Below, piece by piece: positions 3,389 through 61,092 of a stretch of DNA of 64,000 nucleotides (positions are counted from its first letter, which is position 1; the number at the start of each line of letters is the position of its first letter). The stretch is from the sequence record OQ718158.1; one strand, written 5' to 3'. Both the position numbers and the translations under genes were made by a program. The notes beneath the pieces are model-generated. The model was not told the DNA's origin, made no database searches, and worked only from the letters and a program-made list of their open reading frames with translations.

Positions 3389-3955
3389 ATGAACAATTTA
3401 CTACAAGTATTCAAAATTGAAGTTGCAGGGACAAATCTAGATAATATTCCTTATTATATGTATGAAGATTATGATTCATCTTCCCCAACAACTGCACCAA
3501 CCGACCAACAAACAATTGACAAGTCTGTAGCACTACTACGTTACCTACAGGTTACACGTCTACTATCAACTTATTCTGTCCCAGTGTATTGTACTGTTGA
3601 ATTTGCTACCCCAGGCACAGCAGCAACTATTCCAACTGGTGCAACCATCAATGTTGGTTATATCAGCTACGAGCCATTCCTAAGCACTCTAAGTGTTGAA
3701 GAACAAGCTGCACTAACCACTGTTGATCTTAAAACTGCTAAAGCAGCAGAAGTTATTCAAGAGTTGCTAAACGAATCCCTAAAAGGTGACGGTACTAACG
3801 CAATTGAGAATGAAGAAATTTCTGTACAGAAAACAATCCAACGTGATAAAGATGCACTATCTACCACCACTGTTGATTTCATTGAGTACGAGAATGTGTA
3901 CCTAAACGTACCTTCTATTACTGATGCTTCTGTAGTTTCTTACGTAAAATTATAA
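3389..3955 (+). CDS. Hypothetical protein, probably late/virion
   Basis: ORF with GGAG RBS, preceded by ATAAATA late-type motif near 3347; T/A/V-rich. Confidence 0.55.
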   Translation: MNNLLQVFKIEVAGTNLDNIPYYMYEDYDSSSPTTAPTDQQTIDKSVALLRYLQVTRLLSTYSVPVYCTVEFATPGTAATIPTGATINVGYISYEPFLSTLSVEEQAALTTVDLKTAKAAEVIQELLNESLKGDGTNAIENEEISVQKTIQRDKDALSTTTVDFIEYENVYLNVPSITDASVVSYVKL

Positions 3956-3978
3956 TTTAACCACATGGAGTTCTTGAC

Positions 3979-4173
3979 ATGACTGACAAAACCTTTTATG
4001 ATCGTATTATTGAAGACAAGGGTGTTTTCGATAAAGTAGTTTATGACTTAGAACTTATGATCAAAGATGCACCAAATCCACGCGTGCGTACTCAAGCAGA
4101 GTTTGCTAAAACTTATCTAGTGCAAGTTCAAGCAATCTGTGAAGCAATTAAAAAACATAATGATAGTGCTTGA
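3979..4173 (+). CDS. Hypothetical protein
   Basis: 64 aa ORF with GGAG RBS. Confidence 0.6.
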   Translation: MTDKTFYDRIIEDKGVFDKVVYDLELMIKDAPNPRVRTQAEFAKTYLVQVQAICEAIKKHNDSA

Positions 4174-5319: not shown

Positions 5320-7485
<2,166 letters not shown>

Positions 7486-14605: not shown

Positions 14606-15083
14606 TGTAAAATGTAACCTTAATGCAGTCGTGTATGCAATCAACTGTGGTGCAGATATTCAGTACTTACAGCTACAGGAGATTGACGAACCGGAACGAT
14701 TGAAATTTAACGATAATTGTAAAAAATTTGGTTTAGAACAGCGTATGCTGGATTATACAATAGAACATGATAAAAACCATGAGCTATGGCGTTATGATCC
14801 AGTGTACGATAACATCAACTTGCGTGAGTACTTTTTACAGAAATGTACATCGGATGAAGCCCGTGAACGTGTAATGTATGAGATTGATTTGTTTGAACAT
14901 TACAACATGACTAAGCTTTTAAGATGTATGATCTGGTTAGTTGATTATATGGAAGAGCACAATATTTTTTGGGGTCTTGGGCGTGGTAGTTCAGTGGCTT
15001 CGTATTGTTTGTTCCTGATTGATTTGCATATGGTTGATTCTTTGAAGTATAAACTAGATGTAAATGAATTTTTGAAATGGTAG
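14565..15083 (+). CDS. Stand-alone fragment of DNA polymerase III alpha (DnaE)-like protein
   Basis: ARERVMYEIDLF...LRCMIWLVDYMEEHNIFWGLGRGSSVASYCLFLIDLHMVDSLKYKLDVNEFL mirrors DnaE [34 protein letters not shown]. Confidence 0.8.
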   Translation: MKVQGNRFISPNGDVKCNLNAVVYAINCGADIQYLQLQEIDEPERLKFNDNCKKFGLEQRMLDYTIEHDKNHELWRYDPVYDNINLREYFLQKCTSDEARERVMYEIDLFEHYNMTKLLRCMIWLVDYMEEHNIFWGLGRGSSVASYCLFLIDLHMVDSLKYKLDVNEFLKW

Positions 15084-15146
15084 AAAAACATGTGATATAA
15101 TGTTGTTTGAGGCGTTATATCACTCACATAGAAAAAGGATTTTTAT

Positions 15147-43384: not shown

Positions 43385-43512
<128 letters not shown>

Positions 43513-43516
43513 AAAT

Positions 43517-43602
<86 letters not shown>

Positions 43603-43619
43603 CAATTAAAGGTTAAACC

Positions 43620-43780
<161 letters not shown>

Positions 43781-43784
<4 letters not shown>

Positions 43785-43941
43785 CACATGAAGAATGGAT
43801 GAATGACATTAATTTTAGATATTCGGGTATCGGTAAATGGCTAAAGTATCATTGGGAATTCATTTCAGAGCCACATCTGTATGATAAACTTATCAACGAT
43901 CCAGCATATGAAATGTACTTAATTGAACTACTGGTACGAAT

Positions 43942-43945
<4 letters not shown>
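43781..43945 (+). CDS. 54-aa MTHEEW microprotein, array unit 2
   Basis: MTHEEWMNDINFRYSGIGKWLKYHWEFISEPHLYDKLINDPAYEMYLIELLVRI; ATGA-coupled. Confidence 0.75.
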
Positions 43946-44113
<168 letters not shown>

Positions 44114-44114
44114 G

Positions 44115-44535
<421 letters not shown>

Positions 44536-44540
<5 letters not shown>

Positions 44541-44565
44541 CTAAATAGTTCAGTACTGATATAAT
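44536..44565 (+). promoter_or_regulatory. Repeated promoter cassette copy 2, drives the ncRNA
   Basis: CTTGACTAAATAGTTCAGTACTG-A-TATAAT. Confidence 0.9.
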
Positions 44566-44571
44566 GAATTC

Positions 44572-44912
44572 CACAATCAGACGTATATGGTGTAAGTTAC
44601 GTCGATGTAATCCAGAACAAGATCTCTGGTACTCTAGGAAGTGGTGAATGTTAACCTAGACGGGTTTGATAATTGGACGATAGGCAATTATTACTTGACT
44701 AGCAGGTTTAAACTAGAGGTGACAGTCCTTTACCAAACTGGAAAACCGGATGGACTTTTATTTAAAAGGGTAAGGCGTGGAAATATGTTTACAGTAGTTG
44801 CTTTTAGTAGCCTGTACGCCCCACGTCAAGGTAGCCGAAAGGCAAGTTAAAACGGGTGGTTATAAAGCTGAATTAACAGCGGCGTTTAAAAGCGTCACCA
44901 TCCATTTTTTTT
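44572..44912 (+). ncRNA. About 340-nt highly structured ncRNA of unrecognised family
   Basis: Own promoter; GC-richer than flanks; helices GACGTA/TACGTC, CCAGA/TCTGG, CTAGG/CCTAG, GATAATTG/CAATTATT, GGCGTGG/CCACGTC, GCC-GAAA-GGC, GGGTGGT/ACCATCC followed by T8. Confidence 0.75.
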
Positions 44913-44928
44913 AATTAAAGTTGGTGAT

Positions 44929-45570
<642 letters not shown>

Positions 45571-45572
45571 AA

Positions 45573-45730
<158 letters not shown>

Positions 45731-45755
45731 CAAAAAAAAACAATGAGAGGTATAA

Positions 45756-46508
<753 letters not shown>

Positions 46509-46510
46509 AA

Positions 46511-46539
46511 TTGACATATCATTGGATGAGGTGTAATAT
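46511..46539 (+). promoter_or_regulatory. Sigma70-type promoter
   Basis: TTGACA-N17-TAATAT. Confidence 0.65.
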
Positions 46540-46582
46540 GGTTCAAGAAGAAAACTGGGGTTTTTAACACAAAGAGGCCAAT

Positions 46583-46629
<47 letters not shown>

Positions 46630-46654
46630 TGCTGCACCTATGCCTACTCTTGGC

Positions 46655-46725
<71 letters not shown>

Positions 46726-46726
46726 A

Positions 46727-46766
<40 letters not shown>

Positions 46767-46769
46767 TCA

Positions 46770-46841
46770 GGTCGATTAGTTAAAAGAGTATAACACGGAC
46801 CTTGTAAGTCTGAATAATCAGTGCAATTCTGATATTGACCT
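46770..46841 (+). tRNA. tRNA-Thr(TGT), no encoded CCA
   Basis: GGTCGAT/ATTGACC, D arm GTTA/TAAC, CGGAC-CTTGTAA-GTCTG, ATCAG-TGCAATT-CTGAT; ends T-CAA. Confidence 0.8.
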
Positions 46842-58231: not shown

Positions 58232-59200
58232 GTGAAAAAGCTTGATTTAAATGCAATTTCTGAAGAAGTACTGGATGAGTGTTTTGCTAGTGAAGAAGTC
58301 AACGTATTAGAGGCTCTTGATTCCGTAGAAGAAGAAGAAGAACATGACGGTCACAAGTTTGAGAAACCAAAAACAGGTATCAGCTTAACTCGCCCTAAAG
58401 GGATAACGAATGAAATGCTCATCCAAGCAGTGCGTGATGGCATAGACGTTAAAAAGAACATTGACCTTTTGGTTCGCTACAACTATCCAATGGTAGTAAG
58501 TGTTGCACGTAAGTGTACATGTTTTATCCCATTTGAAGATAAGATTTCTTATGGTGTTGAAGGTTTAATGCGAGCAATTCATACGTTCGACACTACCAAA
58601 AATGTTAAGTTCATTACATATGCAACAACAACTGTGTACATGACAATCTATAACGAAAGTGCAGATGCTAATTATCTAGTGCATTTCCCACGTTATATGA
58701 GTGTTAATAACATTTATGTGAAACGTTGTGTTGAAGAGTATCAAAGGAAACATGGTAAATACCCAACTCCTGAGATGGTGTCAAAAGAGACTGGTATTGA
58801 GATTCAACACGTTAAGAATTGTCTAACTTACAATAACACTTATGTAGCATTGAATATGAAAATGAGTAATGATTCAGAAAGTACATTATCTGACATTGTT
58901 ACTTCAGTTGAACCTGATTACAACTTAGGTGTAGAAACTGTCAGTACCCCACTGGTACAAAGTATTGCAGAAATGATGAGTAACCTATCTACCAAAGACC
59001 GTGAATTGATTGAACGTGTACATGGTATTGGTTCTTATTCTGAACCAGAAACGCTACGAGAAATCATTGAGAGTGGTTTTGAAGATGAGAAGGGTAAGGT
59101 CATGACTGCTCGTTCTTCATTGCACCGTAAGTACTCTGAAGCAATGGAACGACTGCGTAAGATGGTTAAGACAAAAGGTTATGAGTTCGAAGATTTTTAA
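58232..59200 (+). CDS. Phage-encoded sigma70-family RNA polymerase sigma factor (GTG start)
   Basis: Region 2 LVRYNYPMVVSVARK..EDKISYGVEGLMRAIHTFD..KFITYAT; region 3 PTPEMVSKETG; region 4 LSTKDRELIERVHG. Confidence 0.9.
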   Translation: MKKLDLNAISEEVLDECFASEEVNVLEALDSVEEEEEHDGHKFEKPKTGISLTRPKGITNEMLIQAVRDGIDVKKNIDLLVRYNYPMVVSVARKCTCFIPFEDKISYGVEGLMRAIHTFDTTKNVKFITYATTTVYMTIYNESADANYLVHFPRYMSVNNIYVKRCVEEYQRKHGKYPTPEMVSKETGIEIQHVKNCLTYNNTYVALNMKMSNDSESTLSDIVTSVEPDYNLGVETVSTPLVQSIAEMMSNLSTKDRELIERVHGIGSYSEPETLREIIESGFEDEKGKVMTARSSLHRKYSEAMERLRKMVKTKGYEFEDF

Positions 59201-59204
59201 GATT

Positions 59205-59234
59205 AAAGGGTTGACTTCGGTCAGCCCTTTTTTT
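59205..59234 (+). terminator. Rho-independent terminator with UUCG loop
   Basis: AAAGGGTTGAC-TTCG-GTCAGCCCTTT. Confidence 0.9.
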
Positions 59235-59236
59235 AT

Positions 59237-59264
59237 GGGACAAATTTATTAATGGTGATACAAT
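59237..59264 (+). promoter_or_regulatory. Class-II promoter driving the large ncRNA
   Basis: GGGACA-N13-TGA-TACAAT. Confidence 0.6.
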
Positions 59265-59270
59265 GATCTA

Positions 59271-59745
59271 TGTACAATCACAATGACAGTACTGGTACTG
59301 ACAATCTTCCCCTACTTCACTTGAAAATGTAAAGGATAGATGAGCTTTTCATTGTAGCGAACAGCAAAAGAAACCCGTTAGATGTGGGCATAGTTTGAAC
59401 CCCTCACGGCAATGCGGCTGTATAAAGAACCACGTTAGGATAGCTGGTGGTTCCTCGATAGACATATAAGGATAACACCTTACGAATTATCTAAGGGAGA
59501 GTTATCGAATTTTGTACAGGAAAGTTGCGTCCAAAATTTGAGTACTCACATTAAGTATTTGATTGCATAGATACTTAATGAAGATACACTATGTTTAAAA
59601 GTGTAGACCGTCATATGAAACTGAAGTAGAGAGAAACAGGATGACCCGCTTTCGCACTCGTTATGAGTAATCTTCAATGCAATAGCTCTGATACCATTAG
59701 CGTCAAATTTCCCTCCGTGCGGGGGGGAAGAAAAATCCCTTCCTC
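59271..59745 (+). ncRNA. About 430-470-nt highly structured ncRNA of unrecognised family
   Basis: No ORF of 60 aa or more; GC-rich; end pairing TCTTCCCC(59305)/GGGGAAGA(59724); helices GAACCAC/GTGGTTC, GATAAC/GTTATC with CCTTA/TAAGG, AATTTTG/CAAAATT, CATTAAGTAT/ATACTTAATG, TACACT/AGTGTA, GTCAT/ATGAC. Confidence 0.75.
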
Positions 59746-59769
59746 AAATCCCGTCAATATTAAAAGTCC

Positions 59770-59798
59770 TTGACAGTTATGATTCATTCGCGTAGAAT
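59770..59798 (+). promoter_or_regulatory. Sigma70-type promoter
   Basis: TTGACA-N17-TAGAAT. Confidence 0.85.
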
Positions 59799-59862
59799 AC
59801 GTAGTATTAGAAGCGAACAGACATCTCGAAGAGATGGATGATTAACCACTAAGGAATATCTA

Positions 59863-60296
59863 ATGAATTCAGTAATCTTTTTAATTATTGCTCTTTCACC
59901 ACAATCTGGTGTACAAATCACCCCAATGAATTCAATGAATCAATGCATTGCAGTACGTGACAGTACGTATGAACAAGTAAACAGCGTTTCACTTAGAACA
60001 GTTGGTGAAGAATTAATGTGGTGTTACAATAGTAATACTAAAGAAAAACTAATTGTTGGACAAACAGAATGAGTTATGGTGTTCGTTTTGAGATTCGTTC
60101 TATTGTTATCAATGACGAGAAACAAGCATCGTTGGATGACGATATACGAGAACTATATCTATCATGTATCCGTGCAAAATCTGAAGCAGATGCATTATCA
60201 CAAATGATTGGTTTTAATTTCTTTCATGGATACTATTTGGTACGAGTTATCGAAGTTAAAAAAGTCACTTTTGAGTGTCTTGCTGGAGAAATATAA
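59863..60296 (+). other. Two small hypothetical CDSs (59863-60072, 60069-60296)
   Basis: AAGGA RBS; coupled. Confidence 0.6.
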
Positions 60297-60297
60297 A

Positions 60298-61092
60298 ATG
60301 AGCACTATAGATGAATTGATTCGCCGGAATTCAAAATACTACGAACCATCAGAAATTGTCGGCAACATTACTAAATCTGAGTTCGGACCAAATACTCGAA
60401 AACTCATTCATGTAATGTCACGTGATGGCTTTAAATGTGATTGTTGTGGTGAATCCAATGTGGTATTCACTTTACATAAGCACAGTACTAAAGACCGTTA
60501 TAAATTCAGACCTTATGTACTTAAAGGGAAACGCCTTGTACGCATGACGTTAGACCATAATGTACTAGACTGTCTTCAGGGCGGTAATGATAAAGAGAAC
60601 ATGACTGCATTGTGTGAGGATTGTAACGCATTACGCCAGCATAAGTTTGCTGAGTACAGTGAGTTTAAGTACTGGTATCATAACGCAGATCGTTCCATCG
60701 AGCCTGACGTTAACTACTGCTTCATTGAGTACATTAAGAATGCAAAAGATACATACATTCTAAAATCAATGTCACCTATTACAGTGTTCCCTGAGAATCT
60801 ATTCAGTACTATGCAGCGTGATTTTAAACGTGGTATCATTAATGCATTCAAACACTTAGACAAAGGTATCAAGCACTTTGAGGTGCAATGCTTAAATGAA
60901 GGAATGAATCGTTTAGTACAAATTTACATGAAATCATTTATAGGTGTTGACACCGCACGTCTACCAGTATATAATTACTTTATTGAAAGCGAAGAAGGTG
61001 AATCACTTCGTGATTATGGTGAAAGATTTAATAATAAAGTTTTCACTGCAATCGCAAACGAGATTCATTACTATAAACCATATGTAATTTAA
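60298..61092 (+). CDS. HNH endonuclease with C-terminal extension
   Basis: RDGFKCDCCG..MTLDHNV..GGNDKENMTALCEDCNALR; GGAG RBS before ATG 60298. Confidence 0.8.
   Translation: MSTIDELIRRNSKYYEPSEIVGNITKSEFGPNTRKLIHVMSRDGFKCDCCGESNVVFTLHKHSTKDRYKFRPYVLKGKRLVRMTLDHNVLDCLQGGNDKENMTALCEDCNALRQHKFAEYSEFKYWYHNADRSIEPDVNYCFIEYIKNAKDTYILKSMSPITVFPENLFSTMQRDFKRGIINAFKHLDKGIKHFEVQCLNEGMNRLVQIYMKSFIGVDTARLPVYNYFIESEEGESLRDYGERFNNKVFTAIANEIHYYKPYVI

Follow-up and report, generated by a model that had tools for sequence, protein, structure and literature searches.

A new multi-copy family of large structured RNAs in jumbo phages and some bacterial mobile islands

Large, highly structured RNAs are rare in bacteria and phages, and RNase P, the group I and II introns, OLE, GOLLD and ROOL have each opened a field of their own. 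In the immunity system of phage P4, an integrative element, a segment of the stable CI RNA (about 70-80 nt) is complementary to two flanking repeats in the same transcription unit, and the pairing controls transcription termination. ColE1 RNA II is a long folded pre-primer in which a G-rich stretch anchors the hybrid. Phage T4 has at least five origins, among which oriF and oriG consist of a promoter and an A+T-rich element; some lie at strand-switch regions, and a conserved RNA fold is not needed at them (PMC3016281). ROOL and GOLLD were recently shown to form RNA-only multimers (PMC12286853). In phage PA5oct, RNA-seq defined four ORF-free transcripts of 0.24-0.62 kb, 'putative lncRNA' 001-004, two of which are highly expressed (PMC7318152).

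Here we describe a new, multi-copy, deeply conserved family of large RNAs found in jumbo phages and in some bacterial mobile islands. Comparative support for the family is unusually clean, its invariant core is compact, and because it occurs in the culturable coliphages 121Q, PBECO4, Sharanji and phAPEC6, which grow on laboratory E. coli, it is directly testable.

The unannotated gap in phage vB_Ec-M-J

The DNA that we analyzed, a stretch of 64,000 nt referred to here as the window, comes from Escherichia phage vB_Ec-M-J (OQ718158.1; 378,573 bp), an Asteriusvirus and a Rak2-like jumbo phage. Window positions equal record positions minus 248,000. Between two annotated genes lies an unannotated gap, which contains the RNA gene. 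An earlier note, made from this DNA alone, had described the gap as 560 bp, free of ORFs and enriched in GC. Its length is in fact 662 bp (59201-59862); the lack of genuine reading frames stands, as only mechanical ORFs of at most 43 aa lie inside, and the GC content is raised modestly, to 0.425 in two 200-nt windows compared with 0.31-0.40 nearby.

The gene to the left, which is context and lies outside the RNA, encodes a sigma-70 family factor (58232..59200, + strand; Pfam Sigma70_r2 and Sigma70_r3, and a sigma factor by record annotation). Its transcript would end at an intrinsic terminator with an 11-bp stem followed by a T-run (59205..59230, +). Directly after this, a promoter scan finds an extended -10 promoter for the RNA gene (59237..59264, +), with GGGACA, a 16-nt spacer and TG-n-TACAAT, from which the RNA would start near 59271. 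Comparison with relatives places the conserved RNA body at about 59272-59767 (+). It is followed by a sigma70 promoter (59770..59798, +; TTGACA-17-TAGAAT, 11 of 12 matches in the promoter scan) for a series of small genes to the right of the gap, the first of which begins at 59863; this promoter is kept in the orthologous copies of 121Q, CBB and BF. The consensus scan thereby recovers the upstream terminator and promoter and the downstream sigma70 promoter that the earlier note had placed around the gap.

The second gene after the RNA is annotated in the record as an HNH endonuclease (60298-61092) and has no Pfam match at E up to 0.001. In 121Q, an HNH gene lies two genes upstream of the 247-kb copy, and a consistent HNH association was not seen across the other copies of the RNA.

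Covariation and the elements of the RNA

As a single sequence, the window copy folds mildly better than shuffled controls (z = -1.88), so the case for a folded RNA rests on covariation rather than on folding energy. From a 28-sequence alignment (A2), RNAalifold predicts 55 pairs, and double compensatory changes are present in 32 of these. Custom scans revealed that one helix, P2, has changed its sequence fully while retaining complementarity in at least six lineages, and added a pseudoknot (59610-14/59641-45) and a loop-to-tail pairing (59559-63/59702-06). Full-length pair statistics were computed with a custom script: for 95 curated pairs in 40 sequences, 77% of cells were canonical versus 63 ± 0.4% after shuffling, and moving the partner of these same 95 pairs by 1-3 columns lowered the figure to 39-49%. 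Double-change cells numbered 571, compared with 214 ± 14 in shuffled alignments. Lower figures for some 5' helices stem from the sequence-only alignment of length-variable stems.

For the 3' core, we built a covariance model (R1), realigned 36 matches and counted pairs. Covariation across related phages, a check that the earlier note had suggested, bears out the RNA in this part: 98.4% of cells are paired versus 77.6 ± 1.1% in shuffles, and 134 cells carry double changes versus 38.6 ± 6.7, with 0 of 500 shuffles as high for either measure; slid controls were 36-66% paired. With R1, family members reach 113-185 bits, and noise does not exceed 15 bits. Our working definition of the family is a 3' core reading GACCGU...ACUG...GAAAC...ACCCGC with the pseudoknot and helices P15, P16 and P17, at an R1 score of at least 100 bits. 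The window copy (59546-59707) belongs to the family by this definition, at 121.8 bits, and the next-best match in the window scores 14.7 bits.

G-U is frequently exchanged with A-U or G-C in a way that makes sense on the + strand only, which argues against a purely double-stranded DNA signal. From 59432 to 59831, each 100-nt window of the element shows 93-100% identity between vB_Ec-M-J and phage UE-S1, with 100% at 59532-59631, whereas the adjoining sigma gene is 49-78% and the downstream genes are 59-99% identical; we count this as evidence that the RNA element is under purifying selection. Collectively, the comparisons indicate about 17 helices and at least two pseudoknots in a multi-branched consensus fold; the earlier note, with at least seven helices, had understated the structure. 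Its central proposal, a new large structured non-coding RNA, is upheld by deep conservation, compensatory changes, + strand G-U pairs, a separate promoter and the lack of an Rfam match. In our judgment, the locus is very probably a genuine gene, transcribed independently, for a structured RNA that belongs to a new family. Judged by sequence comparison, it is a stand-alone gene for a non-coding RNA of roughly 0.5 kb, read from left to right, with a predicted start, end and terminator efficiency.

All elements of the window copy described here are on the + strand. The 5' domain (59272..59546), defined by RNAalifold, custom covariation scans and alignment A2, begins with the long-range helix P2 (59280-86 with 59349-55), whose compensations can be read directly from the alignment. 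It encloses P3 (59287-59300) and P4 (59312-59339), which has a conserved GAAAAUGUA loop. RNAalifold also proposed a T-arm-like local hairpin at GAGUAGUUCAAUCAGUAC, which we rejected since it is displaced by the better supported P2. Next come P5 (59361-65 with 59417-21), P6 (59375-78 with 59406-09), P8 (59427-33 with 59447-53) and P9 (59467-82), followed by an invariant AAGGGAG (59493-99) and by P11 with an optional hairpin module (59497-59546). The module, a conserved 17-nt loop closed by CAAAAUUUG (AAUUUUG/CAAAAUU; 59507-59537 in the window), sits on the tip of P11, of P17 or of both, depending on the paralog; the 247-kb copy of 121Q (121Q_247k) and the bacterial copies carry it on both.

The 3' core (59547..59707) is the most conserved and constrained part of the RNA, as judged by R1 and the pair counts. 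It contains P12 (59550-58 with 59571-79) with its loop L12 (59559-70), P13 (59585-89 with 59601-05), the pseudoknot found by custom scans (59610-14 with 59641-45), P15 (59622-26 with 59672-76), P16 (59629-33 with 59649-53) and P17 (59656-59 with 59665-68). At its end lies box B1 (59700-07), part of which would pair with L12 (59559-63 with 59702-06) according to custom scans and duplex energies. Beyond the core, alignments A2 and fam2 place a G-rich hairpin, UUUCCCUCC/GGGGGGGAA (59708..59731), and a table of L12, B1 and B2 in 40 sequences, together with duplex energies, identifies a downstream twin of B1, box B2 (CAAAUCCCGUCAA; 59745..59757). The four strings on which the earlier note had drawn, TCTTCCCC (59305-59312), GGGGAAGA (59724-59731), TTCCCTCC (59709-59716) and TGAGTACTCA (59539-59548), all lie where it had placed them. 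Of the two alternative pairings it had offered for the G-run, the long-range closing pair of TCTTCCCC with GGGGAAGA is not conserved in relatives, and the local hairpin of TTCCCTCC with GGGGGG occurs in every copy, with the GGGGGG arm invariant throughout the family.

We compared the RNA with described families using Rfam 15, which covers GOLLD, ROOL, OLE, HEARO, raiA, 6S, RNase P, tmRNA, group I/II introns and small ribozymes. At the gathering threshold, the only matches in the window were five tRNAs elsewhere; at E up to 10, the region, seven other copies and the E. coli copy described below gave chance matches far below threshold. ARAGORN predicted 0 tmRNA or tRNA-like genes in 58800-60200. 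These scans agree with the earlier note, which had recognized no tmRNA, RNase P or group I/II signature. A five-tRNA cluster (43423-46841) is separate from the RNA gene, lying some 12-16 kb upstream.

Individual candidates were also considered and rejected. Two strings, GAAACCCGU and ACCCGCUUUCG, superficially resemble RNase P RNA, but in the alignment they are not mutually complementary, and no model matched; moreover, RNase P RNA has a P4 helix formed by CR-I and CR-V and is a single essential copy, whereas the present family occurs at 4-5 places per phage record. 6S RNA is a rod of about 180 nt with a central bubble that mimics an open promoter, unlike the multi-branched consensus fold, and its model gave no match. 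A group I or II intron would not fit an element that lies between complete genes and has its own promoter, and again no model matched. Hammerhead-like and RNase P-like strings were dismissed by eye because critical positions or pairings are missing, and no known catalytic motif was found in the RNA family. The PA5oct lncRNAs are not detectable homologs (nhmmer best E = 2.3, non-significant; no covariance-model match). A search of the literature found no earlier description of the RNA family. It is the RNA family that we call new; its mechanism may or may not be.

Copies in phages and bacterial chromosomes

The earlier note had treated the RNA as a lone element, yet it is one member of a multi-copy family. 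By blastn against 50,697 phage records, the segment 59310-59767 matched 62 records, all of them Rak2-group jumbo phages, with hosts in Escherichia, Salmonella, Erwinia, Yersinia, Pectobacterium, Cronobacter, Serratia, Klebsiella and Xanthomonas. The lowest identities are about 68-70%, and 4-5 places match in each record. A two-block pattern of the invariant core found 26 IMG/VR loci, all but two on contigs of 345-378 kb, and 27 further loci in metagenomes. Three full-length copies each were located in 121Q, CBB and Serratia phage BF; they lie at 90.3, 247.4 and 326.6 kb in 121Q, at 32, 94 and 336 kb in CBB and at 93, 259 and 335 kb in BF. In the vB_Ec-M-J genome, we located two copies (record positions 112,040-112,694 and 307,2xx), the second of which is the only one in the 64,000-nt window. 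Paralogs are about 70% identical to one another, and their positions are conserved between genera, which marks them as old duplicates rather than a recently spreading repeat.

Nearly all copies, including both bacterial ones, are preceded by TGRRAC-N15/16-TGnTATAAT. This layout is that of the 'divergent RpoD-like' promoter class described in CBB, where it precedes DNA-synthesis genes (PMC5259590). Elsewhere in the window, weak profile matches at 1596-1661 and 15074-15139 are confined to the promoter part of the family alignment and are likely other promoters of the TGRRAC / TGnTATAAT class. Downstream of B2, many copies keep a leader rich in ACGAAG/ACGAAC (59800-59862 in the window, and equivalents) and a small hairpin, CUAAC-GGA-GUUAG, that contains the ribosome-binding site of the next gene. 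Both are kept even in front of different genes, so that the unit of duplication may reach as far as the start of the gene that follows.

No conserved neighboring protein gene was found among the phage copies inspected. The 326.6-kb copy of 121Q is on the + strand, antisense between two minus-strand genes, one for endonuclease VII and one that adjoins the baseplate hub, and a very divergent metagenomic copy also adjoins a baseplate-hub gene, in the opposite orientation. Across the RNA gene, the GenBank records of WPEC3, SHEFM2K, E9.1, JP4 and Salmonella SD phages carry three to six annotated 'hypothetical proteins', which are probably over-calls.

A scan with the 14-base motif CGTCCAAAATTTGNG proved non-specific, and most of the loci that it returned (L006-L119) are unrelated to the RNA family. 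Separately, a repeat of about 110 nt occurs at least six times in IMGVR_UViG_638275427_000001 (191,100 bp; L010, L056, L061 and L085). Its ends are inverted (TAAATTTCGAGC ... GCTTGAAATTTA), and it has only the 13-mer CGTCCAAAATTTG in common with the RNA family, to which it is otherwise unrelated.

In bacteria, blastn found a 95-nt match in 2 of 5426 complete E. coli genomes. The one inspected, LR-29-1 (NZ_AP027515.1; about 6790-7440 of locus L174), has a full-length member that scores 150 bits with R1 and in which both domains are present along with promoter, terminator, G-hairpin and B2. The island around it, between ffs and ybaA, has a tyrosine integrase split by IS3, unknown genes and an mSLOG-DUF4326 / DUF488 / DuOB trio; this island also contains another ORF-free stretch of 700 nt. 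The strict pattern gave no match in representative genomes, and a relaxed pattern scan of the same set gave one true copy and three chance matches. The true copy, in Citrobacter amalonaticus P55 (about 3480-4130 of locus L176), is full-length and scores 140 bits; the gene directly before it encodes a 520-aa serine recombinase, and a CI/S24-type repressor follows. A recombinase gene therefore adjoins the RNA at both bacterial sites inspected. The two islands also have in common a 118-aa protein of unknown function. A search of plasmids found no family match. With identities of about 76-78%, whether between themselves or to the nearest phage paralog, the bacterial copies represent separate lineages rather than recent captures.

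Possible roles and relation to known systems

Most copies have a canonical intrinsic terminator, a stem followed by 6-9 U, right after B1. The sequence of the stem varies by lineage, the U-run is always present, and in one lineage B1 itself is the 5' arm. After the terminator come the hairpin with the invariant GGGGGG arm and then B2, and this downstream pair of elements is kept from phages to bacterial islands. The terminator is absent from the window lineage, from the CBB, GAP32 and BF counterparts and from a few others. B1 and B2 have about 10 nt in common and change together between lineages, with types CGUCAG, CGUCAA, CUUCAAG and ACGAAG. Box pairs include AUCAUCGUCAG with AUCUCGUCAG, GCGUCAA with CCGUCAA in each of the three Asteriusvirus paralogs, GCUUCAAG with CCUUCAAG in Rak2 and ACCAACGAAG with ACCACGAAG in a divergent metagenomic group. 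L12 matches the box change: CUUGAA occurs with UUCAAG in Rak2, and UUCGU or UUUGU, UUCGU with ACGAA in the divergent group. Calculated L12:box duplex energies average -6.0 kcal/mol for matched types versus -4.4 kcal/mol for unmatched ones and reach -8 to -11.5 kcal/mol in the two most changed lineages, which is suggestive, not strong, support for the pairing. The predicted pairing is 4-6 bp long and is weak in the BF_259k-type lineage, and B1 can pair also with a nearby upstream segment.

These features suggest a model in which the RNA would be transcribed by a host-type polymerase from its own extended -10 promoter. In most copies, the transcript would end at the intrinsic terminator, releasing a stable folded RNA. 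The core loop L12 could pair with B1, just before the terminator, and equally with its twin B2, just past it. Because the two possible partners flank the terminator, folding would set whether transcription stops there or continues into the downstream genes, either in cis or by the action of released RNA on transcripts still being made from all copies. In a copy such as that of the window, which has no terminator, a longer transcript would begin with the RNA, or the RNA would be excised from it. A stand-alone RNA, the fold of which also controls whether transcription terminates or reads through, is, as far as the sequences go, our best explanation overall, though we hold it tentatively and as somewhat short of probable. 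We rank the termination model first on three grounds: twin boxes are present, L12 co-varies with them, and the G-hairpin and B2 are conserved past the terminator. Taken by itself, control of termination and read-through would be a rather doubtful account of the RNA. Its 17 helices far exceed what a switch needs, and the window lineage and four others retain the RNA under strong selection without a terminator, which argues that its main job is something else. In addition, the L12:box pairing is short, its energies separate matched from unmatched types modestly, and the joint change of the two boxes could be due instead to gene conversion or to a protein partner common to both.

Several of these same observations would suit a trans-acting RNA machine, working alone or with protein partners, as a ribozyme, as the scaffold of an RNP or, in the manner of ROOL and GOLLD, as an RNA-only multimer, for which the terminator would be a plain 3' end and the paralogs would provide dosage or hetero-assemblies. 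We rank this nearly as likely, while regarding it, too, as possible rather than probable. The size of the RNA, the number of its helices, its pseudoknots and long invariant single-stranded stretches, the extreme conservation of the core, its own promoter and terminator and the antisense syntenic copy all favor such a machine, as do its retention without a terminator in the window lineage and its carriage by phages and mobile islands, as for ROOL and GOLLD (PMC12286853). It would leave unexplained why the G-hairpin and B2 are conserved past the terminator and why B1 and B2 change jointly, and neither a conserved neighboring protein gene nor a known catalytic motif was found to go with it. Alternatively, each copy could be a replication origin of the T4 kind, with a promoter and a downstream R-loop region, where the folded RNA with its G-run would be a pre-primer like ColE1 RNA II and the islands would carry a copy in order to be replicated. 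The scatter of several copies over each genome, all with a middle-type promoter and one at a strand switch beside baseplate genes, would agree with this, as would the twin direct repeats, the invariant G-run, the A+T-rich stretch after B2 in many copies and the recombinase genes adjoining the island copies. We nevertheless consider an origin improbable, given that T4 R-loop origins do not need a specific RNA fold, that the primer would be cut short by an intrinsic terminator lying before the G-run, that the GC skew does not change at the RNA site and that no tie of the island proteins to jumbo phages was found.

The earlier note had linked the RNA to the sigma factor and to transcription control through RNA polymerase. 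A 6S-like RNA with the phage sigma factor or RNA polymerase as its binding partner, functionally tied to the upstream sigma gene, would fit the adjacency of the two genes in the Asteriusvirus lineage and a promoter class possibly read with phage factors. This adjacency, however, is not conserved: the RNA follows the sigma gene in a single paralog lineage, in Asteriusvirus only; the CBB counterpart lies between CBB_523 and CBB_524, ten genes away from the sigma gene CBB_513; and no sigma gene is among the neighboring genes inspected at the bacterial copies. With neither a 6S match nor a 6S-like rod, we drop the link as very unlikely. Finally, the gap might hold no RNA gene at all and instead be a decayed or short protein-coding region, or a set of chance hairpins. 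Mechanical ORFs of 30-43 aa and a frame of 9-17 codons after GGGGGGAUG in many copies could be read in this way, but 21 of 28 copies have no ORF of at least 70 aa, those ORFs that are found are not conserved between lineages, the mini-frame is missing from the window copy and its peptide is not conserved, and substitutions are compensatory in helices rather than placed at third codon positions. We give this explanation hardly any credence.

The copies, the twin-box/terminator layout and the recombinase-linked islands point to phage gene control, replication or phage-host conflict, and the annotated proteins do not explain the role that the layout of the family suggests. The 'empty' gaps of roughly 0.6 kb in Rak2-like genomes are genes, sometimes filled with spurious 'hypothetical proteins'. 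More speculatively, this new large pseudoknotted RNA class might be a natural ribozyme or RNA-only assembly, or else an RNA-guided switch of phage operons acting through termination control; if the latter were true, the loop would be a guide for twin target boxes at every copy.

How, then, does the family compare with described systems? Like ROOL and GOLLD, and also OLE, it consists of RNAs of hundreds of nucleotides with many covarying helices and pseudoknots, and like ROOL and GOLLD it is borne by phages or prophages and has no linked protein gene. It differs in that neither its sequence nor its structure matches the Rfam models of these three families, and it is set apart from ROOL and GOLLD by multiple copies per genome, twin boxes around the terminator and the absence of adjoining tRNA genes. 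PA5oct is a jumbo phage related to the Rak2 group, and its four lncRNAs are non-homologous to the present family. By analogy with T4 oriF and oriG, the family would provide a promoter-driven non-coding transcript at several dispersed sites, and by analogy with ColE1 RNA II, a long folded transcript with a G-rich stretch; in contrast to both, a terminator precedes the G-run. Compared with the P4 CI RNA, the present RNA is longer, at about 450-500 nt, with a complex core, no homology and another order of elements. The likeness to P4 immunity would lie in the pairing itself, in that L12 is complementary to B1 and B2 and all three change together across lineages.
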